Part shown: in pieces, positions 2,311-57,378 of the stretch
How positions within the stretch are numbered: the stretch's first letter is position 1
How the letters are laid out: each line of letters opens with the position of its first letter
Assembly: GCF_902459465.1 (NCBI RefSeq)
Contig: NC_047078.1
Span: 1,488,001-1,552,000, forward strand
Length of the DNA: 64,000 bases
From: Asterias rubens
Taxonomy: Eukaryota
Reading direction: 5' to 3'
The notes under the pieces: model-generated
What the model saw: the letters and a program-made list of their open reading frames with translations, nothing else
What the model was told of the DNA's origin: nothing
Database searches by the model: none
Translations under genes and position numbers: made by a program

Positions 2311-2528
2311 TGCATCAAGTATTATAGCGTGGGTCATTATGAGTCTCGAGTGGTGAATGAGGGGAGAGGTTCACAGGGGGAGGGATGGGTAGGAATGGGA
2401 GAGATGAGTGTGTGGGGAGGGGTGGGGTCAGGGGAGGGTTGTGTTGGGAGGAGACGGGCGTTGAGAATAAGGATGGGTGTAAAAGAAGGATGGGTGGGGA
2501 AGGAATGGTATGAATAGGGAAGGGTCAG

Positions 2529-2888: not shown

Positions 2889-3295
2889 AGGAAATGGGGG
2901 AGATGAGTGTGTGGGGGAGGGGTGTGGTATATATGGGAGGGGTATATAGGGAGGGTTGGGAGGAGAGGGGAGGTGAGGAGGTTTGAGAATATGGGTGGAA
3001 AAGAAGAATTGGTGAGGAAGGATGGATAGGAATAAAGGTGTAGGGGAAGGGATGTCGAAAGGAAAGTGGATGAGCAGAAAGAAAAGGTGGAGGCATGCAG
3101 GAGTAGAAGACAGAGGGGAAGGGGTTAGGAGGGGAGCGAAGGTGTAGAAAAAGATGAAGAGGCTGTAAGGGATATGAGATAGGGGTAAGCAGTGGAAACA
3201 TATGGATTTGGGAGGGGACAAGTGGAGGAAAAAGATTGCTCAAGGGAAAAGGGTTGGGAAAAGGGCCGATTGTGTAGAAGGGAAGGACTGAATCA
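2889..3295 (+). repeat. G/A-rich low-complexity tract (also 1995-2050 and 2345-2528)
   Basis: Plus strand is almost entirely purines with many GGG runs. Confidence 0.8.
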
Positions 3296-3657
3296 GTGGG
3301 GTGTATTTTTCTTTAGGTGCATATAAGTCAACATTACCGACTGGTGTGGACAATACTTCTGATTTATCTATGGTCGTTTAACACTGAAAACGCCTGGAAT
3401 ATAAAAGCGACTTGTGCACGTAGCGCACGACCGAAAATACGTTCTGCCTAATGATAAATGCCTGCCATTGTATATTGTTTAATGTAAGACTGACCCAAAA
3501 CAAGCAAAATGTTTAATGGTGTGACTTCCCTTACTTGCATTATGGTACAATTTCCAATTATTATGTAAACTCTTCAATTCTGTAGCAAAGATTACTCGCT
3601 ATTCATGCATTGAAAAGAATGACCCAGTTTTGTAGTTAAACAGTAATCAATGTTTAA

Positions 3658-4075
3658 AGGCACTGGACACGTTTGGTAGATGTCAAAGACATGCAGTATT
3701 CTCACTTGGTGTAATAAAAAAAACTGTGGAAATTTAGACTCAACAAGTCATCAAAGTTGCAAAAGAATATTGAAAGAAAATTGTTGCACAAATTTGTGTG
3801 CTTTTACGATGCCTTATTAAAAGGCTTTATGCCTGACGTCTTTTATTATTTGAGTGATAAATAATTACTTCTTTCTCGAAAACTACGTTACTTCAGAGAG
3901 AGCCGTTTCTCACATTGTTTTATACTTTCAACAGCTCTCCATTGCTTGTTACCATGAAAAAAGTACGATTTTTGATAGCACTTATTTTGAGCAACTACAA
4001 ATGTCTTGGCCTTAAAACAGCTTAAAATGATAAAGCAAGATGCGTCTTTTAAAACATAACTGACTATCAAAACTA
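3658..4075. mobile_element. Kolobok-like MITE, family A (degenerate copy)
   Basis: ttaa|aggcactggacacgtttggt followed by the family body. Same family at about 4623-4966, 7772-8333, 13005-13490, 15534-15899, 16890-17272, 18161-18502, 21125-21504, 27681-28059, 31485-31854, 43783-43857 and 46975-47238. Confidence 0.7.
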
Positions 4076-5154
4076 AACTTTATAGCTAGATGTGCCATAC
4101 AAATTCATTATGTGTATGGAATAAGACAAAATGGCTGACCTATACTGGTCAAAGAGAGTGGTGTTTTTATTATATTACTCAGGCTCCCGATCGGACAATT
4201 TTATAAACGGATTTATTTTCTGTTCTGCTCCCCCCCCCCCCGCCCTCCTTCCTCCCTGGAATCACCTCATAATGGGATACGATACAAGTTTGCAATACAA
4301 AGCGAATAAGACAAAATGGCTGACCTGGTGAAAGAGAGTGGTGTTTTTATTCTATTACTTTGGCTCTGGAGGCCAATTTACTAAGCGGATACATGTTCCG
4401 TTCTGGCTCCACCTCCCCTTCTCCCTCCCTAGAGACAATCACCTCATAATTAATGAGGGTCAGGGGATACGACAAACATGCAGGGAAAGGAAGACAGCAA
4501 TTTACGGGGAGTAAATTAAGAGATAATTGTGTCCAAGGGAATGGAAGCGTACTGAGGAATAATTGATGATACACATCGATGCACTCCAAGGATGGAAGCA
4601 CAAGCATTATTTGTTTGTTTAAAGGCGCTGGAACCGTTTTGTAATATTGTTAAAGGCCAGTATTCTCACTTGCTGTATCCCAACATAATATGCTTTCAAC
4701 CACAGACCTGTGAAGTTTTTTGCTCAATTAGTCTTCGAATTTGCAAGAGAATAATGAAAGAAAACACCATTGTTGCGTTATTTTGTGTGCTTTCAGAAAC
4801 CCATTAAAAAAAGTATTTTCTTATTTGAGTGAGAAAATACACCTCTTTCTGAAAAACTACGTTACTTCAAAAGGAGCCGTTTCTCACAATGCTTTCACAC
4901 AACAGCTATATCCATTGCTCTTTACCAAGTAAGTTTTTATGCTAACAATTATTTTGAGTGTCTGTCTTTAATAAAGGGCACAACGCAATTACACAGAGAG
5001 GAGACTGGGTGTTACAGCTTTACTGCAGTAAGCCTAGACTTGTGGTCAAGTCGTTCGATGTCTTTCGCTATGATAGGATACGACTCTCTCGCAAATCTGT
5101 GACCTTCGGTAAAATGTAAGGTGAATTTATAACAGTGGGAATATATATACTTAC

Positions 5155-11300: not shown

Positions 11301-11514
11301 TGATATTCACATGCCGGTGAATTGACTATGGCCATGACGTCATCATTCCATCGTGCATGATTTAACAAGTAGTTGAAGAAGAAAACAAAGCCTCAATTAA
11401 CCCAGAATTTATCTGATAAGAAACCAAATTGTGTTGTTTTGTCCTTGTGGAAGGGCTGAGATGCACTCTTTCCCAAAACATATACCTTTCAGTTTAGTAC
11501 TACAAATCAAATTG

Positions 11515-11985
11515 TCTCATTTTAGAGACGGGATTAAAAGCACAGAAATACGAGAGAAAAACTTGAGTAGAAGGCATCATAAGGACAATAAAACAAGCTA
11601 AATGGAGATGGGCTGGACAATGAAGAATTGACAACAGATGGACAACAAGAATAATGGATTGACAACCAAGGACAGGGAAAAGGAAAAGAGGTAGAAAGAG
11701 ATTGAAGAAGATGGAGAGACGACATCAGGGTATATGCAGGAACAGCATGGACCAAACCTGCAAGAAATAGTAACGAATGACGTTTAATTGAGGAGGGCTA
11801 CATCTTACACTCGAAAATGAAAAGAGGTAGACAGAGAAGAAGACGGAGAGATAACATCAGGGTATTATGGAGGAACAACATGGACCAAAGCTGCAAGAAA
11901 TAGAAATGAACGGCGTTTACATGAGGAGGGCTACATCTTGCACTGGATGAACACGGCCAAAACGATGGTGAAAGATGATGATAAA
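11515..11985 (+). mobile_element. RTE-clade LINE 3' fragment with its last ~130 bp duplicated
   Basis: Frameshifted motifs RDGIKSTEIREK, IKQAKWRWAG, NRWTTRIMD-QPRTGKRKRGR, RWRDDIR and EEGYILHW. Confidence 0.75.
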
Positions 11986-14900
11986 TAAAATAGTCGTTCT
12001 TGAACGCATGCGCATAAATGGACTACACATAGCAACCGCATTTATCAATTTTCCCGCCATTCATCCGTAACCTAGCAATATAATTACCACTTGCTCTTCA
12101 TGGCACTATTTACCCGCATCAATGACAGTACAATTCAGATAGCATATCCCGCTTAGCATCCCTGTCGCTATAAATCGAAGGACGTTTTCCTTTTAGCACA
12201 ACTTTTTTTGTCAATCTGACCTGTAAATTAAGATCTTAATTTCATTTGAAAACTAGATGTTAACATTGTGTAATTCAGTTCTTTACAACTGCCATAAACC
12301 AATCGTTGAGTTTGCATGACTCATCAGCAGTTAGCATTAATACATTAACTTAAAAAAAAAAATAAGACATTAATTTTAAACTGGCTGTTTTATAGACTCA
12401 AATGATTGTATAGGCTTCCAATGATATTGTGTATTACGTGTTAAAAACTGACATTCATGTTTGATGTTTTTAATAAACCATTGTTGATTTGAATTTAATT
12501 TAATTGAGTTGACTATTGGTAATACGTCATTTACATCACGCATGACTTAAAGTAGTTAGCATTTTGTAATTGGCTTACGATTCAGCCACCCCCTTCCCCA
12601 TATCCCTGTTTTGATGAGAGAAAAGCAGTCCATCTCAGCAGACTAATAATTGGCAATTAACATTAAGACCTGTTTATTTTTTATTCAATATGTTTGTTGC
12701 TTATTGTACAAATTAATTAGTGAAGTAATCACATTATTATGCAGTGCCGATAATCCCTGCCGGCTGCTAGGTGTTTTTTAAATGGAATATTAGTTTACTG
12801 TTTGTTATGTTGCCACGGGCAACGAGCATCCTATGTTACCCTCTCTTCGAAAAAAAGCCTAGTTATTCCATTTACGCAGCATGGCTCATTTCTCTCTACA
12901 GCCCGACACGCCATTAATCACTTCTCACTTACGTTGTCTGCCCTATACGTATTTACAACGCTGGAAAATGATTCCATCTTCCAATTGGACTCTCCGGCAG
13001 TTAAAGGTGCTGGGCACGTTTGGTAATTGCCAAAGAACAGTATTTTTACTTGGTTTATTCCAATATATGCATATATAATAACAAACCTAATATTTTGAAC
13101 CAAAATTGGTCATCGAAGTTACAAGGGGAAAAATTAAAGAAAAACCGCCTTTTTTACAAAGATGTTCGTGCATAATAACATGCTTAAAAGACATATGTTA
13201 GTTTGGTAATTGTCAAAGACCAGTCTTCTCACTTAGCTTATATCAAATTGTGAGAATTTGGACTCAATTGGTCATCAAAGTTGCAAGAGAAAAATGTTGA
13301 ACAAAAAACACCCCTTGTTCCAAAAATTTGGGTGCTTTCAAATGCATTTAAAGGCTTCAGGCCTGAATTCGTCTTTTAATAATTTTAAGTGAGAAATTAC
13401 CTCTTCCTTAAAAAACACGTTACTTCAGAGGGAGCAGTTTCCATTTCTTGATACCATTTTGAGTAATTACCAATATAGTGTCCAGTGCCTTTATTATTCA
13501 CTCCCGGTTCTCGACACAACAAAATGGCGAGCGTCAATTACGTGGGGGAAATTAAGCGTCCACGTGGACCCCGTTAGTACAATGGCAAGGGGAAACAATC
13601 AACGTGAAAGATCAGCATTGATAGATGTGGCTGCGTATCGTCTGCTGTGAATTCCCATCCATTCAGAATTCCAGATTGCATTCAATTCGAGCAATAAGGG
13701 AGCGTCTTCTTTAGAAAGGAATTGTTGATGTGGACTTGGGGGGGGGGGGTGGGGGGCAGAGAATGCTCGGTGGATTGCGGTAAAACCATGGAGGTAGACA
13801 TAGTGGAACGAGTATAGTAACGTGGGGGGGGGGGGTAGGTCTACTAAATTATCTTTCTGGAAAAAGGGAAGACGTGTGTTAAACGATAACTCGTGTTTGT
13901 AAAGGGGTGTACTTAGAGTTATAGGGACATTTATTATTTTTCTCTGAAACCAGAAAGATCTGTGCTCAATATTGACTCTGTAAAAAGAGGGTTATCCTTA
14001 TTTTATAGAACGTGCAATTTTGTTTCTGTAAGTAGGAAGATCTGTGTTAACACTGAATCGTGACATATTGTTTACGTAAACTGCTCATAGTATACGTCAT
14101 ACACTGCCGGGAGTAGATGTAGCCTATAATTATGCGGGTTGTGCAGATGTTCAAGTTAATTTTTGATATGAAATGTTAAACGAAAGGAAATAATGTTATC
14201 TCCATGTTTGTTGGAAAGTAGTGTGCTGATTTGTGTAGAAGTTGTGATTTAAAGTTTCTGCATGGTTTTCTATATGAAAGTATCGCTCCGTTTTGTGACA
14301 CCCGTTGGGTGAACGACATCAAGATTTCAAAACTGGAAACATTATTTTACTAAATTAAAGGGGCCCTGGTATTTGTTGTTTTGGTGGTTGAGCCAGCGTG
14401 TGAGTTAATTTATTATTGTATAGCTAAAGTGCGGCCTGTATGTGTCGTGACTCAGAGTTGGTCCAGTCTGCTCGAAGATCTGAAGTGTGTGTCTCATTTT
14501 TGATGAATGCATAATAGTTTGTAAGTAAATGAGTTACGAAAACCACAATGGGAAAGAGCGACAGCGAACTTTGTTACAGCATAATTTTGTCATACAGCAT
14601 AATTTGTGAGAAAACAGAATTAGCTGTTGCAAACAACTTACCAACCAAAAGGACCGACAAAATGCAAAGATGGCCTGACGCTTCGACCCTAGCAGAGTCT
14701 TTCTCGAATGATAACACAATTAAAAACAAACATAAACAGGTAACTATGTTTGTCGTATACAGCAAACATTGTCATACATTCGCAATTTCAGTCAATCTGA
14801 AATAAAACAACATGATATGGGCAAAGTTCCATGACCAACAACAAAAACATCACATAAGAACCATTCCAATTAGCATAGGAACCACCCTAATCCCTAACCG

Positions 14901-17900
14901 TCAACAACAAACACAAGAACGACAACAAAAATTATCATCATCAACAACAATACCACAGAAACTGACGCAGCAATTAGCAACAACGATTAACAACAAAAAT
15001 ACTACCACGGCAACAAGAACAGAACTTTGACGCAACAGCATCAACACGAATAAGCGAGATATATAATGTTCAAGTACATTCGCCCTTGTAATGGCAATTT
15101 ACCTAATGGAGGCCGGCATTTTCACTGGCAGTAATTGAGTTGATTAAGGTTAGAACCATCATGGATCGATGCCTTTGAAAATTATCTTTGGATTTTTTTA
15201 GATTTAAATATTAATAGAAATGATGAATGACCACTGCGAGTAATTCTCGAGGGAAAACATTATTTAATACTGACTAACATTAATTATTTATAGCAGTACA
15301 AATTCACCAACAAAAGTATCTTACTCTAAAAATAATACTCTCAGAGTAAAGGGGAAACGTTACCTGACATGACTTGAAATCATTGCGTATTTTAATTGCC
15401 GCAATCAAAATAAGAACATGGGGCAAATGGTTCTCAAATCTACGGTAAACCGTTTTTGCTGTGCACGGAAACGGTATCCCAAAGTTTCATGACTGGCACT
15501 TGCTGCATTAGGCGAGGATCAAACATGAGTTAAAGGCAGTGGACACTATTGGTAATTACTCAAAATAACTGTATGCATAAAACCTTACTTGGTAACTATG
15601 TAAGGGGCAGCTGCTGATTGATAGTATAAACCATTGTGAGAAACGGATCCCTCTGAAGCTACGTACTTTTCAAGGAAGTTCACGTATTTGATTTCGAGAC
15701 CTTAGAATTTGAGGTCTCGAAAGCATTTGAAAGCACACAGCTTCGTGTGACCAGGGTGTTTTTTCTTTCATTATAATCTCGCAACTTCGACGACCAATAT
15801 TGAGCTCAAATTTTCACAGGTTTGTTATTTTTATGCATATGTTGAGATACACCAATTGAGAAGACTGGTCTTTGACAATTACCAATAGTGCCCAGTGATT
15901 TAAAATGTTTAGACAATAATTAGAACACACTTGTACTTACTCAATGTTTACGCTGAATCCTTTCATGTACTCCAACAATCGGTTAAAAAATCACTTTGTA
16001 CAGAACAAACTTGTAGGCCTAAGACTAGTGTCCACTACATCGACGAGTCTCTTGAATTGTAAACTTAGCGTCACATGTTTACTTCCCAACCCGTACGGAC
16101 CATACGTAAAGTCAAGACGTCAAGGCAGTATTCTGAACGTCATTGAGAAAAAGTACAGTTTATATCAACTACAACGTCCCAACGGTATTCCAAATCTCAT
16201 ATTCCACACTGAGTCTACAACTATAGCAAGAGAATGACACTGAGGAAAGGATGGCAATAACATCCAACTGTAGAGAGTTTACTATAAATGAAACATCATC
16301 AGCGGCGTGTCAAACCATAGAAGAAACCAACATCCACACTAACTCGATATACAGCAGTTTTGGGGCGTTCGTCGCCGCACGAACAAAAAAGTCAATGGTC
16401 GATTTGTTTCCCTTTCTCTTCGAATCCTTGTTTAAAGAGTGACAATTCATTTTGTCTATTCCCTCAGAGGATGAGGCATCCAGCTTTCACCATCCCATGG
16501 TTATTATTAGATTCCGTGAGCAAATACACTGGAGAGGCTCCCACTCTCCTCAAGCCAAACTCCAATTTATTTTGTGTTTTTCCTTCCCGCGCAGATTGGC
16601 TTTGCCGCGCTAGACACGTACGCGCAACACGGACTTGTAAACACCACGCACGGTTTATTGGATTTCACTCGTACGTGCCCGGGCGGACCCTGCCGTCTGA
16701 TTGCTTCTGAGCGCGGCTGAGTCTACATGCAGTGACCGCTCAACTCTCGGCCTCTTCTTCGCACTACGGCTTTTTAAATGAATACGGGTGTTTTGCAGAC
16801 AGTCACGAACTTCTAAATAATGACGTGAACTGACAAGAAATTTATAACAAACTGCTGAATTGAATAATATCCCTTGACAAATTGATATAAAGGCACTCCA
16901 GACACTATTGGTAATTACTCAAAATAATTGTTAGCATAAAAAATGACTTGGTATTAACGAGCTATGGAGAACTGTTGGTAATAAAAAAAAAAACATTGTG
17001 AGAAACGGCTCCCTCTGAAGTAACGTAGTTTTTAAGAAAGAGGTAATTTCTTACTCAAATAATGAAAGACTTCAACTGAAGCCTTTTATTATTCATCTGC
17101 TGAAAGCACACAAAGTAATGCAACAAGGGTGTTTGTGCTTTCATTATTATCTCGCAACTTCGATAACCAATTTTGAGTTCAAATTTTTACAGGCTTGTTA
17201 TGTAATGCATACGTTGGGATACACCAAGTGAAAATATTGGTCTTTGACGATTACCAAAGGTATCTAGTGCCTTTTAATGAATACGGGTGTTTTTTCAGAA
17301 TGTCACGAATCGACAAACAATAAATGACGTAAACTGACAAGGAATTTATAACAAACTGCTGTATGGAATAATATCCCAAGACAAATTGATTTAATACAGG
17401 CCAAAAAAGTACAACACAGTCAAGTAAACAAAACATTAAGCTAAATACAATCTTAAAATGGTTCAGATTTTTGACTTCCTCATTAAATCTTAAACGTGTA
17501 TTATGACTTCCTCATTAAATCTTAAACGTGTATTGTTTCGGATTAAGTTAAATAAAAAATACCCCATGCAGCTAAAACCATGAAGGAAACCTCCACGCTG
17601 AAACAGTAAAACCCAAGTTATGCATAATTATTAATATCCAATGTGGGGTATGTTTCGTTTATTCTCGGCACATTAAAAGTGACAATATAGGTCACTAGGG
17701 TAGATCCATTTGAAGGATTTGTAACACAAAACACAATGTCCACAGATTTACATTAAACTTACACCGTTTGAAGATAATGATAGTAGAAAGCGTACATTAA
17801 AATAGTACATGCTGAGGTGCTGTAGTTTTTGAGAAACGGGTAAGACAATGTCATGAAAAAAAAACTATTAAAATAATTATCGTCTCATGATCAGTGAGAC

Positions 17901-20067
17901 GCAAATTATTTTCATGACATTGTTTTACTCATTTCTCAAAAACTACAGCACCTCAGCAAGTAATATTTTCAGGGAAGCTTTCTACTATCATTATCTTCAA
18001 ACTGTGTAAGTTTAGTGGACATCTGTGGACAATGTTTTTTTTTTTTGCCCTACACAAAGTACATAATACCCTTTTTAAAGGAATCTGTGAGATGGCCACA
18101 CAACCTCGGAAAGCACACATCCTTTTCAATTAGTGAATGTTTTTACATTGAATGGCTTTAAAGGCAGTGGAAACTATTGGAAATTACTCAAACAAATGAT
18201 TAGCATAAAACCTTACTTGGTGACGAGTTCTGGGGAGAGGTTGATGGTTTAAAACATTGTGAAAAACGGCTCCCTCTGAAGTGCCATAGTTTTCGAGAAA
18301 GAAGTAATTTTCCACGAATTTGATTCCGCATCCAAACGCACACAACTTCGTGTGACAAGGGTGTTTTTACTTTCATTATTATCTCGTAAGTTCGATGACC
18401 GATTGAGCTCAAATTTTCACAGGTTTGTTATTTTAAGCATATGTTCAGATACACCAAGTGAGAAGACTGGTCTTTGACAATTACCAATAGTGTCTAGTAA
18501 CTTTAAGTTTTTAATGAGAGGAACAGTTAATCTGCCTGGGGCAGTCAGCAGAACTACTGGTTAGTTCTTGATCCAAAGTCCACTGTTTGGAAAAGGAAAT
18601 ACATGGAGGTAACAGGTGTAAGTTGCTAGACGGAAAGGATGTTTTTAAAGTGACTTTCTTTAATGGAGCACCCGTAATGTGTTGGCACATCTCGAGGATA
18701 GTTTAAGACTGTTTAAATCTGGTCAACCAAAAAGGCAAATAATATGACAACTGACAAAACATTTATCACAACCAAACAAAATTAGGAATTAATCAAGTTA
18801 AATGTGTATGGGAATACAAATGATTGTGTTTCTGATAATATCCGTCTCACACAAAGCTGTACTGTAGTAAGATTGTTTAAAGAAAATCGTTTACAAACAT
18901 TTTATAGGAAAAAAACAAATCTAACCAAAAATCAACCACTGTGGGAATAAATACCGCCCTCTATTGACCCATACAGCGAGAGCCCAACCTTAATAGTTAT
19001 CTAATATTTTTGAAGGGAAACAGAGAAGACACAGACAATTTCTAGAAGGTTTTAAGTTGCTTAAAAATGTGCTGTAAATTTTACGCTTTAATCAATGGAC
19101 GAACTCCACTCTAGAGTATTATGTGTTGTGGTTTTAACATTTTTGTAGCACACCTTAAAGGTAAATAGTGGCCGACATAAACACCAGAATATCTTTAAAC
19201 ATTTGAAATAAATGACACAATGAACAACTTGAATTCTTTTTAAACAACAAAACAAATTTCCTCGGTGTATGAATGTTCTTATATGGTATACATGTACAAC
19301 TTTTTGTGCAATCCCCTCTAACAAATATGACCTGAGCCAAATTTCACAAAGCTGTTCAGCTCAAACTTCTGCTTAGCACAGAAAAGTAATGCTTAGCAGC
19401 AATGGGTTACCAGCGAAAGTACAGTGTAAATTAGATTACGCATGGCCGGTTCCCTGATAATTTTTGCTTAGCACAAAAATTTGTCCAGCAAAAGTTACAC
19501 ACAACACAAATTAAAAACATTTCTGAAGCATAAGGTGCTATAATCTAAAAGCAGACAAGTAAAAAAAGTGTAAGTCTTTTAGCAAGTGTATATCTTGGTC
19601 AAAGGTAAGAATAATATTCCTGTAGTCAAACTTGTTTTATGTGACCAGTAACATTGGATTTTTATTTACAGGGCATCACTAGGAACTAGGGGGTTAAGAT
19701 TTAAAAAAAACAGTGCTGGAGTTTTCTGCAACAACACTCATCTTTTCATCTTCTTTTCTTCGTCATAATGCCTTTCTTCTCGAGGTGATAAACAGGCCTG
19801 GAATTTCATGTTTGAGAAGGCAAAGCCATTTTTATTTTGCAAGAGCACTTTCTTACGGAAATCTTACACAGAGCACTTTTATTGGGAAATCTTAAATTGC
19901 TGTTGGAAACATCTGAAGGGGCACCAAGGCCACGACAGAGGCCGGGGCCATCTTGTAATTCCAGAACTGGATTAACCGCTATATGTATACCAGTTGAAAT
20001 GTTTTTTGTACAAACTTCTGTTATTTTCTGATGGGCTGATGAACAGCAGTGATGAAGTTCTCTATCC

Positions 20068-23000: not shown

Positions 23001-24496
23001 ACAATCGTCTGACTGAACGTTGGCTTGTTGTGAAGTCGAGAGCAACGGTCCCCATGGCGACATGCACCAATCTTGAAGTAGAAGGAACAGTTGACTCTGA
23101 AAAAACACACAAATAAAAAACCAATTGTTCAACCTGGTTGAAGATGCGTCAAAGTCTGCGACGTGGCGATTGAACGTTTGCACACCTTAGAGTTAGGCAA
23201 AAAAAACTAAAACAAAAACAGTTGATCGTCCCCGCCCGCATCCTTTTTGGGGGCCGCATCCTTTGTTATTTTTCAATTTTTTGTGAAGAAAAAAAACACC
23301 TCCATCTTTTCAAAAGGACTGGCGTAGGAGCTTTTTCCGAATCTAAAGTGATGCTCTCGAAAACGTGTAACCGTCTGTTTCATAAAACAATAATAGTGAA
23401 TGCCTACCAGCAAATCTTTTTAAAAATCCGACCCTGTTAATACTAACACAGTAATAGTGTTAACACAGGTCCTCATGTAGCCCTGGTAGGACGTCAGTTT
23501 TTGTTTTAGTTTTTTTTGCCTAACTCTAAGGTGTGCAAACGTTCGATCGCCACGTCGCAGACTTTGACGCATCTTCAACCAGGGTTTACAGAAGGTAGTG
23601 GTGAAATACTTCTCTTGACATATTATTCCATGAAATGCTTTAATGTTTGAGAAAACAGTAAAACCAATTGGCGTTTCGCCGTGTCATGACATGTGTTTAA
23701 AATAAATCCGTAATTCTCGTTAACGAGAATTGATATTGTTTTACTGTTTTCTCAAAAAGTAAAGCATTTCATTGATTAATATTTCAAGACAAGTATTTCA
23801 CCACTACCTTCTGTAAACCCTGTAAGTTATTTGTAAATCTGTGAACTTTTTTTTTTGCTGTACCGAAAGGGTCCAATGGCTTTAAAGCCATTGGACCCTT
23901 TCGGTAAACAGTATTGTCCAAGGCCCACACTTCGTGTATCACAACTTCTATATCAAATAACAAACCTGTGAAAAAGGCTCCAATGGCTTTAAATCAAAAT
24001 TTGAAAAATAATATATATTTAAAAAATAAAAAAAATTAAAAAACAATCACTATCATATTCATAGTATCAGCAAAAAGGGAAAAAAAATGGAAAAGTTTCC
24101 GTATGGCGCCACCACTTTTTCATTCGATATAAAATAATATAGGAACTTATTTACCTGATTCATATATCCCTTTTTGTAAAAATGAGTGAAAAAGTGGTGG
24201 CGCCATACGGAAAGTTATCCCGGGTGAAGAACTGGGCATGCTGACGACTCAGCGACTGGTCCCGCGACGACGCAGGCCAGCGCATGAGCGTGGACGCCGT
24301 GGTATTTTTTGTCAAAATTACATCAACCAATTGAAATAAGAAACAAAAACGAAAGGAGAAATTACCAAGCAAATTCTCCAATCGTATATCTGTGTAGGAC
24401 ACTCGTTAAAATACAAATAAGAACATCAACTGAGGAAAACACTCAAACTTACTTGTCTTTCTCTGTTCCAAAAATCGACGCTAAATACTCCGCCAT
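20068..24496 (-). CDS. U2AF1: U2 snRNP auxiliary factor 35 kDa subunit (U2AF35), 5 coding exons, 230 aa
   Basis: Exons 24496-24453, 23096-22942, 22289-22138, 21665-21532 and 20275-20068, all GT-AG, total 693 nt. Reads [40 protein letters not shown] (CCCH ZnF), UHM, second ZnF ([21 protein letters not shown]) and an RS tail. Confidence 0.97.
23134..23583. mobile_element. Foldback MITE with ~95-bp TIRs in U2AF1 intron 1
   Basis: ctggttgaagatgcgtcaaagtctgcgacgtggcg...aaacaaaaac is inverted at 23495-23583. Confidence 0.8.
23585..23995. mobile_element. Kolobok-like MITE pieces, family C (ttaa|agccattggaccc)
   Basis: Palindromic junction ccaatggctttaaagccattgg. A more complete copy lies at 45910-46269. 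Confidence 0.65.
24095..24215. mobile_element. ~120-bp hairpin MITE (TIR tttccgtatggcgccaccac)
   Basis: Perfect TIRs. A second copy in the opposite orientation lies at 25495-25615. Confidence 0.8.
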
Positions 24497-24609: not shown

Positions 24610-26154
24610 GTAAAATTTCTAAATAAATTACAGCATATATTTTTCAACATCAATTAAAATTTAAGACAAAACTAAGTAATAGCTTTTAATTATGAGCTGA
24701 AAACAGCATTCTTTTAAAACAGTATGATTGTGTAACTTTTGAAGGATTTGATAAATAAAAAAGTTGTATGAAACTTGCGATGGGGGCGTAAAGCTCTAAC
24801 GCCGTGTGGGGCGAATTGACAGTGTTATCCTCGTTCATTATGCTGTCAAATTAGTTTTATATTGTGACGTAAATTAAATCAAACTTTAACTTATTATTAA
24901 AGAAAATAAGTATTGTAGGTCTAACTTGGTTTTTAGAAAAAAATTTATTTTAAACTACTAAATTTGTAGTTAAATTATTTTAGTAGATCACAAAGTTGTG
25001 TTGTCAAAATTTATTTCCAGTTCCGGTTTCTGAGGCAGTGTCGGCTTTATTTGTTTCTAGTTCTTTCCTTATTATTGTGATGACAATGAGACTGTTTTTA
25101 AGTGTAGTTTTGTGAATAAGCTCTACGAATTATACTCTGGGATAGCTAGAAAACCGCAAATAAACACAACAAGTTTCCTCAGTCTTTGTTTTGGTGAGTT
25201 TTTACAACTATTCACTTCAATTTCAACATGTACAATCTTTACTCAAATCAATGAACACTGATTATTTATTGATGATTCAGTAGGGCCTACAGTGTGTGTG
25301 TAAAAAACTTACCCCCCCCCCCCCCCCCCCCGCAAAAAAAAAGAAAAAAAAAGAAGAGAATCCGGACAAAAATAAGAAATAAAATCCACGACCACCACCT
25401 TTTCACCTATTTCCACAAAAAGAAAAAGGAATAATAAATATCATTTTTGTTTGGTAAATAATTAGGTACTTTTATGTTTTATTGTTCGGATAACTTTCCG
25501 TATGGCGCCACCACCTTTCCACTTATTTTTACAAAAAGGGATATCTCATTGAGGTAAATTAGATACTATACTATTTCATATCGAATGAAAAAGTGGTGGC
25601 GCCATACGGAAACCTTTCCTATTGTTCAAAGTTTAAGTTTTTATAACTGTAGCAGGGCATAATATTAATAATGGGTGAAAAAGTGGTGGCAGGATATGGA
25701 AACCTTCGACATTAAATGGAGTCCAGTGACTAGACTGGATACTGTGTCTGTGATAGCCCAGGTTGGACTCCTCCGTTGCATGATAGTTGATAAATGTACT
25801 GAGACTGACATGGTCTGTTATACATAAAAGACAATTGACGAGACATTTATTTAAGTGAAGAAGCAACTACAAAAAGGGGGTTAGTATTAGTAAATCAGTA
25901 CGCTTAAATATAGCGAGAATTATTAATATTAGTTGTACTAAAAAAAAATTGTGTTGTACTAGGAAAAATTATGATTTGTAATACATAACCAATTTCTCAA
26001 CTCATTATATTAAACGGATTCATTATAATGACTTATTAAATGAAATCACACGATGAATGATGTAATTTGGTAATTTTGATTTTGTTTCCCCATATCCCAT
26101 CAGGTCCTCGAGACTGTGTTTCGTGGTTTCATCTTCATCTACAACAAGTCAGCA

Positions 26155-46965: not shown

Positions 46966-47814
46966 CAAAACGCCTGGAATTAGTAATATAGTTTTTGAGA
47001 AAGAAGTGGATTTCGAGACCTCAGATTTAGAATGTGAGGTCTCGAAATCAAGCATGAAGGCACACAACTTCGTGTGACCATGGTGTGCCAAGGGTGTTTT
47101 TTTTCTTTTTCATTATTATCTCGCAACTTCGACGACCAATTAAGCTCAAATTTTCACAGGTATGCTTTATTATGCATATAATATTGAGATACACCAACTG
47201 TGAAGACTAGTCTTTGACAATTACCAATAGTGTCTCTAAAGTCTCTGAAATGACTGGAATTTTAGTATCAATGGCAAAGCAAATGAGAGGAAGTTTTTCA
47301 TGAATTACAGATTTTTCGATTTACCATATTATGGTATGTTTAAAATGCATGATCTGTTTTGGATATCACGTACAGTATATGGACAGGCCCAGCTACATGG
47401 ACAGGCATATATATTAATGATAATGTTATGAAATAATTATTAAGACAAGCAAAATGTGCAACCAGTGCGTGCGACCTGGTTCCTCATATCGGGATGTTTG
47501 AGCTTAAAAACAGACTTTCTGCTTCTTCTCATCCGTTCACTCTTGCTTTGCTGAGATAGAACAAAAAGCCACTCAAACAGGTTTTTTTTTCCAAACGTAA
47601 GCCTATCTTTTCAAAACTCCTTGCCTCGTTGTTTCCCCCACTCCTACAATCTACAATCCTACAATCTAATCTTGTCTACATTAATGTAATCTTGATACAT
47701 TTTAAGAGGAGTGTCAAATGTTATTACCAGCTTCTATATTTTGTTCTGACATACTGATATTAGATTTATACTAAGCCCGGGAAGGGACAGTGGAAAGAAA
47801 AAAATATGCAGGGG

Positions 47815-48130
47815 CTAATTCGTTCGCACGGTTTAGTAATCCGTTCGAACGAATTAATAATCCGTTCGCACGGTTTAGTAATCCGTTCGAACGAATTAAT
47901 AATCCGTTCGCACGGTTTAGTAATCCGTTCGAACGAATTAATAATCCGTTCGCACGGTTTAGTAATCCGTTCGAACGAATTAATAATCCGTTCGCACAGT
48001 TTAGTAATCCGTTCGCACGGTTTAGTAATCCGTTCGAACGAAATAGTAAACCGTTCGCACGGATTAATAATCCGTTCAAACGAATTAGCAATCCGTTCGA
48101 ACGAATTAGCAATCCGTTTGCACGGTTTAG
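47815..48130. repeat. Subterminal 18/21-bp higher-order tandem repeats in the left TIR (mirror at about 56605-56965)
   Basis: Alternating TAATCCGTTCGAACGAAT and TAATCCGTTCGCACGGTTTAG units. Confidence 0.9.
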
Positions 48131-48196
48131 CCAAAGCATGAAATGGCGCTGCACGCATGCGTAAGCGATCCCCTCATAACAACACTTTGCTTCAAG

Positions 48197-50921
48197 ATGG
48201 CGGAGGGCCGCGACACAAGTTCTGACTCTGATGATGACCGTGTTGGTAAGTTTGTCAACAGATGCATTGCTAATTGAAAAGACAAGGTTGGACACTTAAA
48301 AGGTCCCGTAGAGATTACATAGAGTTGTCGGTATAGGTGTATATTTGTTATAATTCAGGGTAACGTCATTATCACTCTGGTTTACTGGTCTCTGTATCAG
48401 ACCAGCCATCGATTCCACCAAACTCTTCCTAACTTGGGATTAATCTTAGGACTTAGGACGAGTCCCAGCCTTGCACTGAAACATGCAAACCTTAAGATTA
48501 ATCCTAAGTAAGGACGAGTCAATCGCCCCAATTCGAGATAGGATAAATCCTAGTGTTTCGTGAAATCGGCTGCAGGTAAGAATGTTATGTCACATAATGC
48601 AAGTAGGCCACTTTGCATTGACTGGCACCGGCCACAGGATAGTTACGATTATAAAAACTATGGGCCTGAAAAGGCTTGTGTGTTGTGTATGACGGCAAAA
48701 AGGTTATGAGAGTAAGCATATCACAACATACCCAAAATCCTCCTCAAAACTTTGGTCGGATCTGAAGATTTCTCCTTCACAAAAGTCATTTTCATTTCTG
48801 CTAATATATATTTATGTGCATAAATAATTTAGCGTGATGATAAAATAGCTAAATGTCACCCATGTTGAGGTAAACACGTGTGTAGTCATTGTGTAAAGGT
48901 GTTATCAAGCACTCCACAAATTTGTTGTTCATATGCACTGGGCCGTTCCAGGTAGTGACAAGTCTTCCCCAGTGGCTTTCAGAACATAGCATTACCATAA
49001 TTATGTATTACCCATGTTGCTATACAAAATACTGGTGAAATTGTTTCACTGTTGTATGAGGACATTCATAGTAAGGCTAGTATACTTTTGGCTGTTGCAA
49101 TTTATAAAATGTATTGTCAACCGTGGTGATACACCGTTACCTTTTATACTCTGAGTCATTGGAGACACAAGACACAAAGTTTTGACGTTTTGCCACAGCT
49201 TCAATTAAATTTTGTTTTGAAGTTTCGCCAGATACCAAATCTTGTTTGGGCAAGCTGGAATCAACATCAGGGCTAACAGACTTTAATTAATAATTATAAC
49301 ATATCCAAAGGACACCTGCAGTCCAGTGGACCGCATTATTTTGTGTGCATTGCAATGGTTCAAACCATGACTTAAAATTGTGATAAAATCTCACATTAAA
49401 ATTAAAACTAAATAAGTATTTACTTTTTGATGTTTGTAATAAAGAAATTTCTTAATGTTTTGTCTCAACATGCAGATTTCCTCAGTGACAACCTTGAAAA
49501 CGTTCGTCCTTCTTCCAGCGAGAGGAATACCTCAACACCAGGAAACAAAATTCAAAGAATCAAACTCCATCGGGGTCAGGTTTTTGTAGAACTAAACAAC
49601 GCTGTCAAAAACGGCACAGTATCATCGAATGATGCCGTTATTGAAGTCGAGATGATTCTACCTAATGGAACTGTTGAAAAAGGGGAAGATAATGGGGGGG
49701 TCTTCAGAGACGCTCTCGCCGAATACTGGGAAACATTCAACAAGAAATGTGCAACAGGAAGTATCATAACAGTTCCAGTAACCCGACATGACATGAAAGA
49801 AACGTGGAAATATGTTGCTGAAGTTATGATTATTGGGTATAAAACAGTGGGTTATTTCCCCATCAAACTTGCAAAACCATTCATGAATCATTGTTTTGGA
49901 CATAAAACACAGGAAGACGAGCTTGTAAAGACATTCTTGCAGTTTATTCCGGACCACGAGAAAAAGATCATTGAGCAAGCTCTTACAGATTTTCAGAGTG
50001 TTAGTGAGGATGACGAATTTTTGGATATGCTGGATTCCCATGAGGTGAAACCCTGCGTACGTGAGGACAACTTCAAAACAATCTTGTCAGAAGTGGCTCA
50101 TAAAGAACTGATCCAGGATACTGCATACATATCAGATTGCTGGCGGGTTCCTCTCAAACAACGTTTGACACAACTACTACCAAAAGGGGGTCTGGATGAG
50201 TTGTATAACAAGCTAAAGCCCACACCCCACAAAGTGACATCCATCCTGCAGTTTGAGGAACATCTCGAGCGAAAAGAGCAGAGCATCTCTACTTTCTTGA
50301 AGAAATACATAAGGCAATGCCCTGAGGAACGTCTTCTAAGGTTTCTTAGATTTTGCACAGGTACTGCATTTTTTATTTAGACGAAAACACTGACTCTGCT
50401 TTTTTAAATTCAAATAAATCATTAACATGACATTTTAAACTCCATGTTAGTGTAGTCTAACCTGAAGGAAAAGTCAGTTGTACACGTAGGTTTCACTTAA
50501 AAAAATGAAGGTATATTACATGATGTACATTCTATTATTGCGTTACTCGGTTATTTTCTGGGGTTTAAGATTAATTGTACATTAACATTATTTTGATAAT
50601 TATATGTTGCAAAAAGATTGCTTGAACATTGATATGCGTCTCTCAAATGTAGTTTTTCAATTTGTACACTCAGTAGACGTTGTGCACTGTATTTGAGTAA
50701 TGGATGATAAAATCGTTCTTCTAACAGGTGCAGATGTCCTGATTGCATCATCTATTAAGGTGAGGTTTGTAGAACCACTGAGTGACTTCTCAAGAACTCC
50801 TGTTGCACACACCTGCGGTTATGTGCTTGAGTTTCCCAACAGCTATGGCTCCTACTTAGAGTTGGCAGAAGAATTAACCGAGCTCCTTGACTCAAAAGTA
50901 TGGGTAATGGATATCGTATAA
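48197..50921 (+). CDS. Transposon-borne stand-alone HECT-domain E3 ubiquitin ligase, about 375 aa
   Basis: Exons 48197-48245 (in the TIR; inferred), 49476-50360 and 50728-50921, GT-AG and in frame (1128 nt). Motifs GEDNGGVFRD, LLRFLRFCTG and catalytic PVAHTC. Confidence 0.85.
48403..48575. mobile_element. Small Harbinger-like MITE inserted in the left TIR only
   Basis: cagccatcgattccaccaaac...gtttcgtgaaatcggctgcag. It is absent from the mirror position in the right TIR. Confidence 0.6.
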
Positions 50922-52297
50922 ATCAGTAAGCATGAGATAAAGTAAAGTAGCCATTGTAATAATATATGCATTTAGGTTTTATGCTCAACTCTATTTTACT
51001 CTTTTTTTTTTTAAATGCGTCAGTGTCTTCCATCGTGTTCATATAAGAAGTTCTCTAAACCATAATGTTCAATTCGGCACAATTCACAGTGTGTCCATAG
51101 TTCATGCACAGTGCAAATTCATTAACAGTTTATGTTACCATAGTTTGACCATTATTACCATTGGAACAATCATAGGCTGTTTAGGTCATAGGTCAATTTA
51201 GTGTCACAGAAATGGATGGAAGACACAAATACTTTTCTCAGTTGAGAAATAATTATTTTTCCTAATTTTATTTGAAAGCTTATGTATCTTTTTTTTGTGG
51301 TTGCATGATATGCACTGTGTACCAATCTAAGTTTCCGATCCAGCAGTCTAAGCCCCTTATTATTTAGAAAAATAAAAGCTTATAACTGATTTGCAGGGAG
51401 TGCTCTTATTACTGTTATCTAAAGGTAGTTCTTCATGAAGAATGACTGGGAATGGATGAAAAACAAAAAGGTTTGATAAAAATAACTGATATTTGTGTAC
51501 AAAGAAGAAGAAAAATGCTTCATTGTAGATAGACAGTTACGTGTTGTTTTTTATACTCGACAAAGAAATCGATAGACAACTGAAAAACGGTTGACATTTA
51601 TGCAAAGATACATTACAATTTAATGGTTGTTAAACAAATTGAACGAGTCATGCTTGCGTGTTCATAACACTAATTGTAAAGACCAACCCCCCCCCCCCTT
51701 ACAAATTCGGGCATGTGAAAACATTTAATTGTTCTTTCTTTATTCTAAACAGTTGATGATGTATATTTTTAAAAGTATTGATAACAACAAATCATAGGCC
51801 TAGCCTGGAAAGTATTTTCCCAGCCAGTGACGCAAACGGTGGTTCAGCAGTTAAAGTACATTATACGACTTTATTAATGCACACAACATAAAATCGTCAA
51901 AACCTACATACACAAATTAGACAAGTAAAATGAAAGTATCAAACATTTCTGAGCTGCTGTAGGGGTAGTATAAATCGTTTTGAAAGCATTTTATACAGTT
52001 TAAGTGTTATATAAGTGTTGCAGTTTTCTTGTAGTTTTTAAGAGTTTTAACAGTATATCACTTTGTGTTTCTCCCGGGACATTTATGATTTGTTGGCGTA
52101 TCTATAGTGAAAGGAACCTATAGAAAGAACATATTTTTAAGTTAATAATTATTTCAAGTCTGTTTTCTTCCTAGCTAGAATTACTTTGAAAATATTTTCT
52201 GATATTTCCAACAAAAACTTGAATTTCATTCCAATATTTCAAACTCTCTATAACTAAGATGGTCACACCAAATGGCGCACCCATTGCGGGAACTTAA

Positions 52298-52687
52298 AGG
52301 AACACGTTGCCTTGGATCGGGCGAGTTGGTCAATAAAAAGCGTTTGTAACCGGTTGTTATAAAATGCATATTATGGCTAGAAAGACATTTTAAAAGTAGA
52401 ATACAGTGATCCACACAAATAGGCCTCGAAATTGCGTGGTTTTCCTTTTACATCGTGAACTAACACGGTCGGCCATTTTGTGGAGTCAAATTCACAAAAT
52501 GGCCGATCGTGTTAGTTCGCAAAGTAAAAGGAAAACCGCGCAATTTCGAGACATAATTTTGTGTGGATCACTGTATTCTACTTTACTAACATCTTTCTAA
52601 CATAGGCCTATGCATTTTATAACAAACAGTTACAAACGCTTTTTATTGACCAACTCACCCGATCCCGATCCAAGGCATAGTGTTCCT
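52298..52687. mobile_element. Palindromic Kolobok-like MITE nested in the IS3EU element
   Basis: ttaa|aggaacacgttgccttggatcgg...gatccaaggcatagtgttcct|ttaa. Confidence 0.8.
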
Positions 52688-54240
52688 TTAAGCACCACCC
52701 CCCCCCCCCCAACAAACACACAGGCAATAATGTCATTTTTACAAATGAAAACAAAAAAAATAATAACAGTTTGCAAGGGGGAAAAGCTAACTTTGTTACC
52801 GTGGTGGTGGTAAAGTAAACAGATGGTGGTGGTGGTGGTTGGGGGGGGGGGGGGGTATTATATAACGAGCACATTTTCTGTCTGACAAACTAACTAATGA
52901 TACAAATTTAAATGTCAGATCCTAAGTTTACATATAAATAAAACATAAAAATAAAAACATTGTTTAGCAAGACATCCTGTGCGCCACTTTTAAACGGTGT
53001 ATAAAGAAACACGTTTGTATTATACATTTGTAACTGTCCTAATAAAACTATAGCCTTACCATTGAGTTGTCATGCTGACAGGGCCCAATTTCATAGAGCT
53101 GCTTAAGCAGAAAAGAAGCTAAGCACAACAAAATTATGCTTACCAGAATAAGGTAACCAGCCAAAATACCATGTCACATGCACCATTTCTTAATGCCTGC
53201 TCATTTTTGCTAATCACACATTGTAAGCAAAATTACCTGCTTAAGCAGCTCTATGAAATAATTTGGCCCTGATCTTGTCTGAATGGCATACATTCACGGC
53301 AATTAATTTGTTGAACATTTTGCCACGATGCACTTTTTAAAAGATTGTTTACACTATTTTGTTAATCTGTTTTCTGTATTCCATTGTTAGTGTTTACTTG
53401 CCGTTTGTTTCAATAAAAAAGAACACATCAATTCGCCAAGAACTTATTACTTGTCATTCTTATACTTTAACGGCGTCTTAAAAACTGTTGTCAGTTTGCA
53501 CATTATTGGCGAAGTGGCTCAATATTGAGCATTCATCACTTGCTTAACAACACATGGCGGCCTACTTTATTAATTTTAGACAATCGGCTTGAAATGAAAC
53601 GACGATCTCTTCTTCAGCTTTTCGATAACGTATACACTTTAGACTTTATTCACAAGTGTATGATTTATACTTACTTTTTAAACAGTATATTGACCGTAAC
53701 TAAATTAGATCTTTAATAAAAACGCGCTAAATGTATTTTGTGCTTGCACTTCAAGCCCACATGCACTTTTAATTTGAAAGAGTTGTGTGTGTATTATTTT
53801 GAAGTATTCATGTCAAAAGCTTTGACAGAGAAGGCAGAATGCTGGTTTGCAGCTCTAAGACCACAGTCAAACACTCCAAGATCTTGGCCCAATTTCATGG
53901 CTTTTCTTACCGCAGAATTCTGTGCTTGTGATCTCCATTCTTCGCTTACGGTGAAAATGCTGAATTTCGGCGCTAGTTTAAGCAAAGAATGCCTGTGAAA
54001 CGTGAAGTACGCACGCGCCCAAGAAACATTTTCGTGCTAATCTGTGATAAACACTGCTTCCATAATCGCCGATTCGTTGCTTACGGTAAACAGAGCCATG
54101 AAATTGGGCCAGGGTTTTGGTATAGTAACATAATCGTACATAGGACGTGGAAGGCAGAGGTGGGTTGGTTTATCCCATGTTTTGCTAGATCCAATTATGT
54201 TCATTTAGTATTTTCACTAATCTGAAGATTGTAATAAATG

Positions 54241-55627
54241 TTATTCATTTAATACTGACAATACCTCTCTCAGAACGAGGTACAATTCAAGTCCACTGTA
54301 GGCATCATGTGACAAAGTAAGGTGTCTCTTTGCCATGATAAAACTGCAAAGACGGAAGACGTCCTCATCGCATGGAATCGATCCTCGGAAGATACATTCT
54401 TCCTCACATTCGTCTAAATCATCTTGAGTGATCCCCTGTGTGTAGTTTTTAGTGTTATATAATTCTGGCACGAAATACATAACATTTGGTCGGCCGTGTG
54501 GTACATTTTCATTCTTGGATGGGGAAATGATATGCGTATTCCACACATCAGCTGTCCGGTCAAGTTCATCCTGAAAAAAATAGTAATAATAAATTATAAA
54601 AAGTGTTAAAAAGATAATTATAATAAAAATAGATTTGCACACACATATGAAATATTACTGACTCGAAAACTTTCAACTATAAAACACCAAGTTTGTCATC
54701 ATGAGACCTACTCACGTTTGAAATTGACAAATTGTCATAAAAATAAGGAAAACAAGAAAAGAAAGAGCAACACAAGCAGTATAAAACGTGTACCTGGATT
54801 AGGCCGAGGAAACAGAAGAGAACTAGGTTCACGTCAAGAAAGGTGCCATCAAAGTATCCCTCGTTCTTCATTCCATGGAAAAATTCTAGCCAGAACTCAA
54901 TGCATTCTTTCCTCAAAAATCCCCAAAAACTTTCGATCCGTTGATTGTGGTTGCTTGAACCGTACATGAAACTCCTTTCTTCTGCAAAGGCATCACTTCC
55001 ATTACGCCGTAAGAATCTCTGGAATTCCCGTACATAGCAGTTCTCTGTCCCACGGTCTGCTCTTACAATTCTAGGACAGCCTTGAAGACTTTTTACAGTT
55101 TCAACGAAGTAACCGCCGATAACTCTTGGATCACTGCTGGTCCTGTACGCATTGAGCCAGCATAGTTTTCTTGCAAACCCGTCAATGCATCCATTAATGC
55201 ACAGACCGAAGGGACGCAACTTGTCATAGGAGTCCATGTGCCATATATAATTTGGTCCCTTTGAGAAGTAGGACCGTCTTGATAGTCTTCTTGCACGCCG
55301 CATTTCCGTTCCAATAGGATCGACCAAAGACAAGATAACCCTGACGTGTTCTTTTCTTACATTTAGACCATTCAATTTGCATTTTTCAAACATCCATCTG
55401 TATCCATGACAAGAACCTGACCCTTGGAGTTCTCGTCTTATGAAAGCAACCACTTCTTGAAGATTGGTATAATTTTTCCGACGAAAAAGCCCTTGTCTCT
55501 GTAAGGTCCTCTTCAAAGTTCTTTCACTTAAAAGTATTTTGTGTTTTGCAATAAGAATATTTACAATATCCTTATACTCCAGGCCAAGGTGAAAATATAT
55601 CTCTATCAGTTTGTTTCGGTTGGTCAT
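54241..55627 (-). CDS. IS3-like DDE transposase with an N-terminal HTH-like region, about 387 aa
   Basis: Exons 55627-54794 and 54570-54241 (phase 0, GT-AG). Triad WHMD...ADRGTEN...NQRIESFW. N-terminus MTNRNKLIEIYFHLGLEYKDI...SERTLKR. Confidence 0.88.
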
Positions 55628-55970
55628 GTTCGTTCTTGTGGTTGAGAATGGCACAGACTATTTGATGAATTCTGATGCTGGTAGACTATTGAAGCTGTTA
55701 GGGGATGCCGTTAGACTTTGCTCAAAAGACCTAATAGAAACAAAATAAATATAAAGATGTAAAGTGCTATTTCTTTGAGAAGGAATGGAGCATAAATCCA
55801 ACGTTATGGTGGCACATAAATAAAGGGAAATGTATGTACTCTCTTTCTAAATAGCATAATCAAAAGAAGCCTTCATTGGGAAGGTAGGGATGAGAAGTAG
55901 ATGGCTCAGTAAGTTTGGTCATCTAATGAGTCTCCATTATGCAGAACCCCCCCCCCCCCCCCGAAAAAAC

Positions 55971-56012
<42 letters not shown>

Positions 56013-57378
56013 AACAATCTAACAAACAAACAACAAACAACAAGTAACTCGCGTATTTGGGAATAATTTCTCGCTCGCTCTATTAATACTAATGGAGTCA
56101 TTTGTTCTGTAAATCGTTACATAGACATGACACTGTTTTGTAAAACAGCGCATTCTCTCCCGCCATACCCGTCAACTATGTCACCCTTTTGCCGTCAAAA
56201 GAGTCAACCACAAGCTTTTTTAGACCCACATTCAATTGTTATAATAATTATGATAGTGTGATCTTGTGGCCAGTGCCAGTCAATACTAAAGGGCATATAC
56301 GTACAAAAGTAAGTAACATTAAAATTCGTAGGTGTTTTACACAGACCAAAGTGATAATTACATTACCCTGAATCAAAACAACTATACACACTACCGACAA
56401 CTCTATATAGTCTATATGAGACCTATTAAGTTTCAATTAACAATGTATCTGTATCCAATCATACTGATCAAGATTGAAAAACTTACCAACACGGTCATCA
56501 TCAGATACGTCAGGTTTACTTGCGTCGCTGCCCTCCGCCATCTTGAAGCAAAGTGTTGTTGTGAGGGGATCGCTTACGCATGCGTGCAGCGCCATTTCAT
56601 GCCTTAGTTAAACCGTGCGAACGCATTACTAATTCGTTCGAACGAATTGCTAATTCGTTCGAACGGATTACTAATTCGTTCGAACGGATTATTAAACCGT
56701 GCGAACGGATTACTAATTCGTTCGAACGGATTACTAATTCGTTCGAACGGATTATTAAACCGTGCGAACGGATTACTAATTCGTTCAAACGGATTGCTAA
56801 TTCGTTCGAACGGATAACTAAACCGTGCGAACGGATTATTAATTCGTTCGAACGGATTACTAAACCGTGCGAACGGATTATTAATTCGTTCGAACGGATT
56901 ACTAAACCGTGCGAACGGATTATTAATTCGTTCGAACGGATTACTAAACCGTGCGAACGAATTAGCCACTGCATATTTTTTTCTTTCCACTGTCCCTTCC
57001 TGGGCTCCGTAGATTTATCAAGTCAGGATGGTTCTTTTACAAAAACACAACACCATCATCGGTATAGGGTCACAAATGACCTGCCTAATGTCACATTGAA
57101 CAACTCAAATCCTTCCCTCAGCTCTCTTGAGTTGTGTTCATCCTTGAACCCCTTTCACAAAGAACATTTATCATGGTGCCGCCATCTTGATTTTGCTCCC
57201 ATTCAAATCAAAGCAATCAAACCGAGGCTGGAAGGAGAAACAGTCTGGTTCCCTTTTGTACAATGAGTAATAGTATATTTTATTGCAAAGGAAACGAGGT
57301 ACATGACCAAGATGGTGACAGCATGATAATGGTCTTTTGTTGCATTGGAAAAAAATACCATGTTAGCCTTACAGCTAA

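Follow-up and report, generated by a model that had tools for sequence, protein, structure and literature searches.

The stretch of DNA analyzed in this work, hereafter the window, comprises 64,000 nucleotides of the sea star Asterias rubens (positions 1,488,001 to 1,552,000 of the forward strand of contig NC_047078.1, NCBI RefSeq assembly GCF_902459465.1), and positions below are counted from its first letter. At 47769-57011 it holds what is very probably a low-copy, cut-and-paste transposon of the IS3EU/GingerRoot type, of the kind that carries two genes: a spliced DDE transposase gene and, converging on it from the opposite strand, a gene for a HECT-type ubiquitin ligase. The relationship between the element and this cargo is real and general, the same pair of genes recurring across phyla inside 6-bp target-site duplications (TSDs). 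Additionally, the 375-aa ligase encoded in the window is an in-frame deletion allele of a protein of ~675 aa. We hold these structural conclusions with good confidence.

The body of the element lies between two copies of the hexamer GATTTA and has the ends TAC..GTA. The exact boundaries, 6-bp TSD, TAC/GTA ends and long terminal inverted repeats (TIRs) proposed in an initial annotation of this DNA are therefore all present, and are arranged as follows:

47763..47768, no strand: left TSD, GATTTA; the same hexamer directly abuts both ends of the element
47769..48381, plus strand: left TIR, with the terminal motif TACTAAGCCCGGGAAGGGAC, a 21/42-bp array at 47816-48130 and a mini-exon in its inner part
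56345..57011, minus strand: right TIR, with a 21/42-bp array at 56609-56964, a mirrored mini-exon at 56541-56487 and the end ...CCGTA
57012..57017, no strand: right TSD, GATTTA, adjoining the right end of the element

IS3EU is defined by TA..TA termini together with a 6-bp TSD (Kojima and Bao 2023, PMC10045372), and both are found here, the left end reading TACTA and the right end ...CCGTA. The terminal motif is TACTAAGCCCGGGAAGGGAC on the left and, when reverse-complemented, TACGGAGCCCAGGAAGGGAC on the right (in longer form, TACTAAGCCCGGGAAGGGACAGTGG and TACGGAGCCCAGGAAGGGACAGTGG, the latter again as reverse complement). The TIRs are ~610-660 bp long, 83% alike when aligned with gaps and 90-91% alike in ungapped segments, each contains a 21-bp unit repeated 15-17 times (at 47816-48130 and 56609-56964), and the core of this unit has 24 matches in the window, all of them within the two TIRs, where 0.05 would be expected by chance. 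A terminal motif of ~20 nt, TACGGAGCCCnnnAAGGGACA, is recognizable from mussel to fish (in the zebrafish, sturgeon, blenny, urchin and mussel elements), related elements starting with TACGGAGCCC or TACGGAACCC, and the relatives likewise have 6-bp TSDs (GAGATA, GATTCA, GTTTTT and CACTTC).

The transposase gene is formed by two exons:

54794..55627 (read 55627-54794), minus strand: transposase exon 1, 278 aa, with a helix-turn-helix-like N-terminus and the DDE core in HMDSYD, RADRGTEN and NQRIESFW
54241..54570 (read 54570-54241), minus strand: transposase exon 2, the C-terminal 109 aa and the stop; the intron position is that of the zebrafish and loach elements

Joined across a GT..AG intron, these exons give a protein of 387 aa without stop or frameshift, as anticipated for the minus-strand transposase in the initial annotation. 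Its best Pfam match is the integrase core rva_4 (4.5e-23), while rve, at 0.0018, stays below its cut-off, and the N-terminal 50 aa have a weak Clr5/helix-turn-helix-like match. The residues D, D and E of an integrase/IS3-type DDE enzyme stand within HMDSYD, RADRGTEN and NQRIESFW, surroundings that the relatives conserve. A database search yielded 649 relatives, the best of which are 51-68% identical, stem from many fishes, sea urchins and freshwater mussels, and are nearly all of ~380-390 aa when complete; identity is 49-61% to the transposases of the six gene-pair loci considered below, and 57% to that of a zebrafish element with the same ends. Taken with the 6-bp TSD and the TA..TA ends, this integrase-type DDE transposase supports the earlier assignment of the element to IS3EU.

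The second gene, on the plus strand, is distributed over three exons, the first of which lies inside the left TIR:

48197..48245, plus strand: mini-exon in the left TIR, 49 nt from ATG to GTTG, followed by a GTAAGT donor and ending in phase 1
49475..49476, plus strand: junction of a 1,203-bp deletion relative to contig L009 (see below), coinciding with the 3' splice acceptor cag/AT
49476..50360, plus strand: main HECT exon, with a linker remnant, the N-lobe and the start of the C-lobe, ending CAG/GTACTG
50361..50727, plus strand: HECT intron, GT..AG, common to the loach element (L007)
50728..50921, plus strand: last HECT exon, after ...taacag, with the catalytic Cys (PVAHTC) and the stop at 50921

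The resulting model has 375 aa, no internal stop and the PVAHTC motif (in 50728-50921), which agrees with the HECT protein of about this length, open and with its catalytic Cys, that had been proposed on this strand. The mini-exon is in frame both with 49476, in the window allele, and with exon 2 of the full-length allele L009, and is probably used in RNA. An NCBI model for the same region (P0001, LOC117303616, Asterias rubens) is 99% identical to the window product and has the same last junction (FCTG/ADVL), but starts only at an internal Met; Pfam HECT matches it with 29.6 bits (7e-7; cut-off 23.9). A profile of 13 family members matches the HECT domain of HUWE1 over positions 29-342 of 358 and, along two shorter stretches, also that of UBE3C; all 13 members have the catalytic Cys (alignment A2). 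The AlphaFold2 model of the zebrafish in-element homologue, a relative 28-30% identical to the window protein, has a predicted local distance difference test score (pLDDT) of 81, and Foldseek matches it to HUWE1, NEDD4 and SMURF at ~1e-12 to 1e-13. Judged from these models, the predicted ligase holds a complete bilobal HECT fold with a conserved catalytic Cys, at an identity of 12-19% to solved and Swiss-Prot HECT domains.

The mini-exons are mirrored in the two TIRs (48197-48245 on the plus strand and 56541-56487 on the minus strand), each reading ATGGCGGAGGGC to GTTG and then GTAAGT. The right one is out of frame with the transposase ATG at 55627 via either of the two acceptors examined, and would therefore provide a leader with a short upstream open reading frame on that side.

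For the comparison with other genomes, loci were fetched around transposase relatives picked by taxon only, and an acorn-worm locus (L001) was fetched via its HECT protein. At five of the six transposase-anchored loci, a convergent HECT homologue lies 0.7-5 kb downstream of the transposase (zebrafish L004, sea urchin L005, freshwater mussel L006, loach L007 and blenny L011), and the acorn-worm locus contains a transposase in the same convergent layout. In zebrafish, loach and blenny, both ends and 6-bp TSDs (GAGATA, GATTCA and GTTTTT, respectively) enclose both genes, the ends reading TACGG..CCGTA, with TACAG as the left end of the blenny element. The initial annotation had regarded the HECT gene as maintained cargo and not as a neighboring host gene, and this co-occurrence of transposase and ligase within TSD-flanked ends across phyla, together with the selection analysis below, speaks for that view. 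Linkage of the two genes is the rule, yet falls short of being universal for single copies.

Some of these loci have peculiarities of their own. In the acorn worm (Ptychodera flava, L001:9400-20600), two inverted HECT genes flank the transposase, and the locus contains a 915-nt inverted repeat, 96% alike (10908-11822 and 18100-19014), and long arrays of the 21-bp type at 2300-4250 and 16690-17190; the layout points either to the rearrangement of one element or to the nesting of two. The blenny (Salarias fasciatus, L011) element, of 12.7 kb, sits in an intron of an Nramp-family gene model, and its annotated transposase gene spans a 4-kb intron.

The HECT exon was compared with its closest relative, the Logan contig L008 (78% identical in DNA), over 279 codons, giving a nonsynonymous rate (dN) of 0.122, a synonymous rate (dS) of 1.24 and a dN/dS of 0.098; the ratio is 0.23 for the N-terminal module and 0.42 for the linker. 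Since dS is near saturation these ratios are rough, yet they are far from 1, and the value of 0.10 for the HECT exon indicates that this domain evolves under purifying selection. Individual copies do decay, as L008 itself carries a 1-nt frameshift. For both proteins the sea-star element is closest to the loach element (61% for the transposase and 53% for the HECT protein), while the zebrafish element pairs best with that of the sea urchin, and in a HECT tree of the six elements that carry both genes sea star and loach are joined with 100/99 support. This pattern departs from the species tree and is consistent with an old age of the element lineages, with horizontal transfer, or with the two combined.

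What the window lacks becomes evident from other alleles of the same locus. The ENA contig L009 is 99.5-99.6% identical to 48412-55900 of the window and has 1,203 extra bases exactly at 49475/49476, and a contig of run X4, from another individual, has ~1.2 kb of unmatched letters at the same position; because these bases are present there and absent from the window, the 375-aa protein is a deletion allele. The extra bases of L009 account for an exon of 92 nt, an intron and the initial 783 coding bases of the large exon, and together with the TIR mini-exon they give an uninterrupted frame of 675 aa, the HECT part of which is identical in protein to that of the window, with one nucleotide difference in 884. 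The deletion in the window is recent; at its junction a short similar sequence occurs on both sides (tctcaacatgcag and tctcacatatg), and both the splice acceptor and the reading frame are kept. The possibility that 49476 is a normal intron acceptor whose upstream exons are missing was considered and ruled out, as the L009 allele shows a deletion junction. Consequently, two aspects of the initial description have to be revised: the ligase was called intact, whereas the window haplotype is without the 1,203 bp, present in L009, that code for the N-terminal module; and the bare HECT domain was taken as a feature of the protein, whereas the relatives examined at their loci all have ~190 conserved residues before it.

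These residues form a module with a helical, SAM-like segment (...DEqL..yGDRlA..fC) followed by a second part (GW...QVR..GGGTRH...LFFPNG...LRlYL), which is predicted to fold as a beta-grasp (pLDDT ~95), with matches to ubiquitin-like folds such as those of RAWUL, UFM1 and GABARAP. The full ligase is accordingly modeled in four parts, the SAM-like helices of the N-terminus being followed by the ubiquitin-like beta-grasp, then by a Ser/acidic linker and lastly by a bilobal HECT domain that is complete. We take this SAM-like plus beta-grasp N-terminus to differ from the domain layouts of HUWE1, NEDD4/SMURF and G2E3. No trace of the module was found in the window by tblastn with the loach and zebrafish N-terminal regions, no Pfam family matched it, and a feature search gave generic ubiquitin-like leads only, all with scores <0.9. 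The module profile collected 2,044 representative clusters at 50% identity, with Pfam HECT in 26 of 47 long members, and the AlphaFold DB fold-cluster matches come from molluscs, corals, hydrozoans and fishes and are uncharacterized proteins named "SAM domain-containing" or "HECT domain-containing". The module model (m41b76ae4f549) also has weak matches to two "alpha-type protein kinase" proteins of fungi, at ranks 17 and 22, with E ~1e-6 and template-modeling scores of 0.35-0.39; on the basis of this fold comparison, the accessory proteins of fungal and animal IS3EU elements may share an adaptor module.

Regarding expression, the data are assembler contigs only, and splicing is deduced from where these contigs end. 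In run X2, depth is ~18 in the exon, 4 in the intron, 27 downstream and nearly none upstream, and contigs end at 49475, 50362 and 50724, which are the places where spliced and unspliced forms would diverge, given the letters shared at the junctions; among the joints listed for the contigs there is no splice joint. The HECT region looks transcribed and spliced in this run.

Regarding copy number, the HECT region is present at >=90% identity in ~1 copy, as a single contig per run with a depth like that of its neighbors, and the family is therefore low-copy in the sea-star genome. In run X3, labeled "organism B", 93% of the sampled HECT-region words are present at >=99% identity, so that a copy of the element exists under a second species label, which could reflect a sister species, a hybrid or a labeling issue. 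The interior of the element also contains repeats of a quite different abundance:

48363..48760, no strand: high-copy interspersed repeat, resembling a miniature inverted-repeat transposable element (MITE), in the first intron of the HECT gene; word depth 1e3-1e5 versus ~12-70 for its neighbors
52125..53312 (52125-52718 and 52917-53312), no strand: at least two high-copy repeat insertions between the two genes; word depth ~1e5

Assembler word depths in these three short segments reach ~1e5-1e6, and inverted joints near 53083-53180 in many contigs suggest fold-back MITEs. The interior MITEs mentioned in the initial annotation are real repeats, with word depths to ~1e5 at all three places. Elsewhere in the window, a palindromic CCGTA/TACGG motif at 24082-24220 and 25488-25626 was considered as a pair of IS3EU ends and rejected, the terminal motif being absent there. 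These are inverted 139-nt segments, 88% alike, each with a small palindrome around TTTCCGTATGGCGCCA, and are unrelated to the IS3EU ends beyond the letters CCGTA.

In what we consider the most likely, though hypothetical, reading, the ligase works on behalf of the element by attaching ubiquitin to a target in the host or to the transposase. Binding sites for the transposase are probably provided by the 21-bp motifs, and the inner part of each TIR probably supplies a promoter and a first exon. The ligase would accept ubiquitin on the Cys of PVAHTC and pass it on, with the N-terminal module selecting the recipient, and this transfer probably aids the spread of the element itself. Recipients could be the transposase complex or, in the host, a factor of chromatin, silencing or repair. 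Without its module, the deleted allele would have lost this targeting and would be weakened or inactive.

Several observations weigh against this explanation, or against parts of it. Ligase activity and its need in transposition are predicted properties, and the window copy itself is without the presumed targeting module. A complete sturgeon element with TSD CACTTC (L010) has a transposase and no detectable HECT gene, and no transposase lies within 10 kb of the HECT gene at a loach (L002) and a sea-cucumber (L003) locus, linkage therefore not being obligatory for the persistence of a copy. The transposase tree of the six elements that carry both genes is a star, so that co-divergence of the two genes is at most a possibility. 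With ~1 copy of the HECT region at >=90% identity, current activity is hypothetical. Finally, the splicing signal comes from contig ends and not from reads, and the branch at 49475 could equally be the deletion polymorphism. As for the sturgeon element (Acipenser oxyrinchus, L010:9818-16773), it has conserved ends and a nested Tc1/mariner fragment at 12545-13142.

Two alternatives concern the nature of the HECT gene. The first would make it a host gene, or a host fragment captured only once, between the ends of the sea-star element, in line with the NCBI annotation of P0001 as an ordinary uncharacterized gene and with the HECT-only loci of loach and sea cucumber. This is already contradicted, and we give it hardly any probability: the pair lies within ends and 6-bp TSDs in three fishes and beside a transposase in urchin, mussel and acorn worm, the sea-star HECT copy finds its closest relative in the loach element and not in another echinoderm, and the cellular HECT subfamilies are all distant, with 12-19% identity to solved and Swiss-Prot HECT domains. 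A much more serious candidate, to which we assign a chance only slightly short of even, is that the HECT gene of the window copy is a decaying remnant, whose 375-aa frame is a chance survival after the recent deletion. The 1,203 bp that were lost encode the conserved N-terminal module, the frame across such a junction is kept with a roughly one-in-three chance, the NCBI model starts only at an internal Met, and the closest relative, L008, has its 1-nt frameshift. Nevertheless, nothing in the remaining protein has decayed yet, since it is identical to that of the full-length allele (with the single difference in 884 nucleotides), and run X2 shows signs that the region is transcribed and spliced. 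Moreover, decay of this copy would concern the window allele only, and is compatible with ubiquitination on behalf of the element as the best explanation for the family.

The other alternatives concern the target. HECT ligases commonly control protein turnover, and the ligase may be real cargo directed at the transposase of its own element, as an autoregulator that limits or times transposition. The conserved, fixed convergent layout of the pair would suit such a role, and so would the apparent transcription of the two genes from TIR sequences that mirror each other. We nonetheless regard it as rather improbable, given that the family of the N-terminal module is very large and diverse (>2,000 clusters) and that the module evolves faster than the transposase (25-53% versus 49-62% identity), which fits a target that itself changes. 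A bolder version of the host-directed explanation is equally tentative: animal IS3EU elements would be obligate two-gene transposons, their ligase would be a counter-defense effector acting on a host chromatin, silencing or repair factor and likened to viral E3 ligases, and the same module would be joined to a kinase in fungal IS3EU. If this is true, the IS3EU superfamily would carry a swappable enzyme head on a conserved adaptor.

To our knowledge, enzymes directed at host proteins are found in few DNA transposons. If a single lineage of transposons has kept a HECT ligase under purifying selection in hosts from molluscs to fishes, it would offer a natural system in which to study how a mobile element manipulates host protein turnover, and would explain many of the "uncharacterized HECT/SAM domain-containing protein" models in fish and invertebrate genomes, which should count as transposon genes and not as host genes. 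Additionally, the deletion polymorphism offers a natural pair of alleles, one full-length and one without the module, for comparison.

Papers on IS3EU/GingerRoot cover the transposase, ends and TSDs (PMC10045372, PMC6839031, PMC12730594, PMC11934779), and a literature search, with Repbase/Dfam annotations lying outside it, found no paper joining IS3EU and HECT, or "transposon-encoded" and HECT. IS3EU-1_DR was defined in zebrafish, as cited in PMC11934779, and the Repbase consensus sequences of animal IS3EU elements must physically contain the HECT gene. The element described here shares with IS3EU/GingerRoot (PMC6839031, PMC10045372) the 6-bp TSD, the TA..TA termini and an integrase-type DDE transposase, as well as the presence in zebrafish, cnidarians, acorn worm and molluscs. 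It differs from the published descriptions of animal IS3EU consulted here, which mention a transposase only, in that a SAM-like/ubiquitin-like/HECT protein is a recurrent second gene, and from the plant GingerRoot elements in its TIRs, reported there as 100-150 bp long and here of 610-660 bp with 21-bp arrays.

The fungal IS3EU families (Kojima 2025, PMC12730594) end TAYGG..CCRTA, a consensus to which the right end of the window element, reading TACGG, conforms. They belong to the same superfamily and carry passenger genes for an alpha-kinase and a TET/JBP dioxygenase; as in the sea star, the gene of the accessory enzyme is opposite in orientation to the transposase, and the role proposed for it, an escape from host silencing, is comparable to that considered here. 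The enzyme itself differs: animals have a HECT ligase where the fungal families have a kinase or a dioxygenase. With the cellular HECT ligases (HUWE1, NEDD4/SMURF, UBE3C and G2E3), the element protein has in common the bilobal HECT fold, a GGVFRD-type start of the N-lobe, the FLRFCTG motif and the Cys in (P)xxHTC, but at 12-19% identity no subfamily is clearly closest, and the element gene, unlike theirs, is mobile, multi-copy and patchy across taxa.

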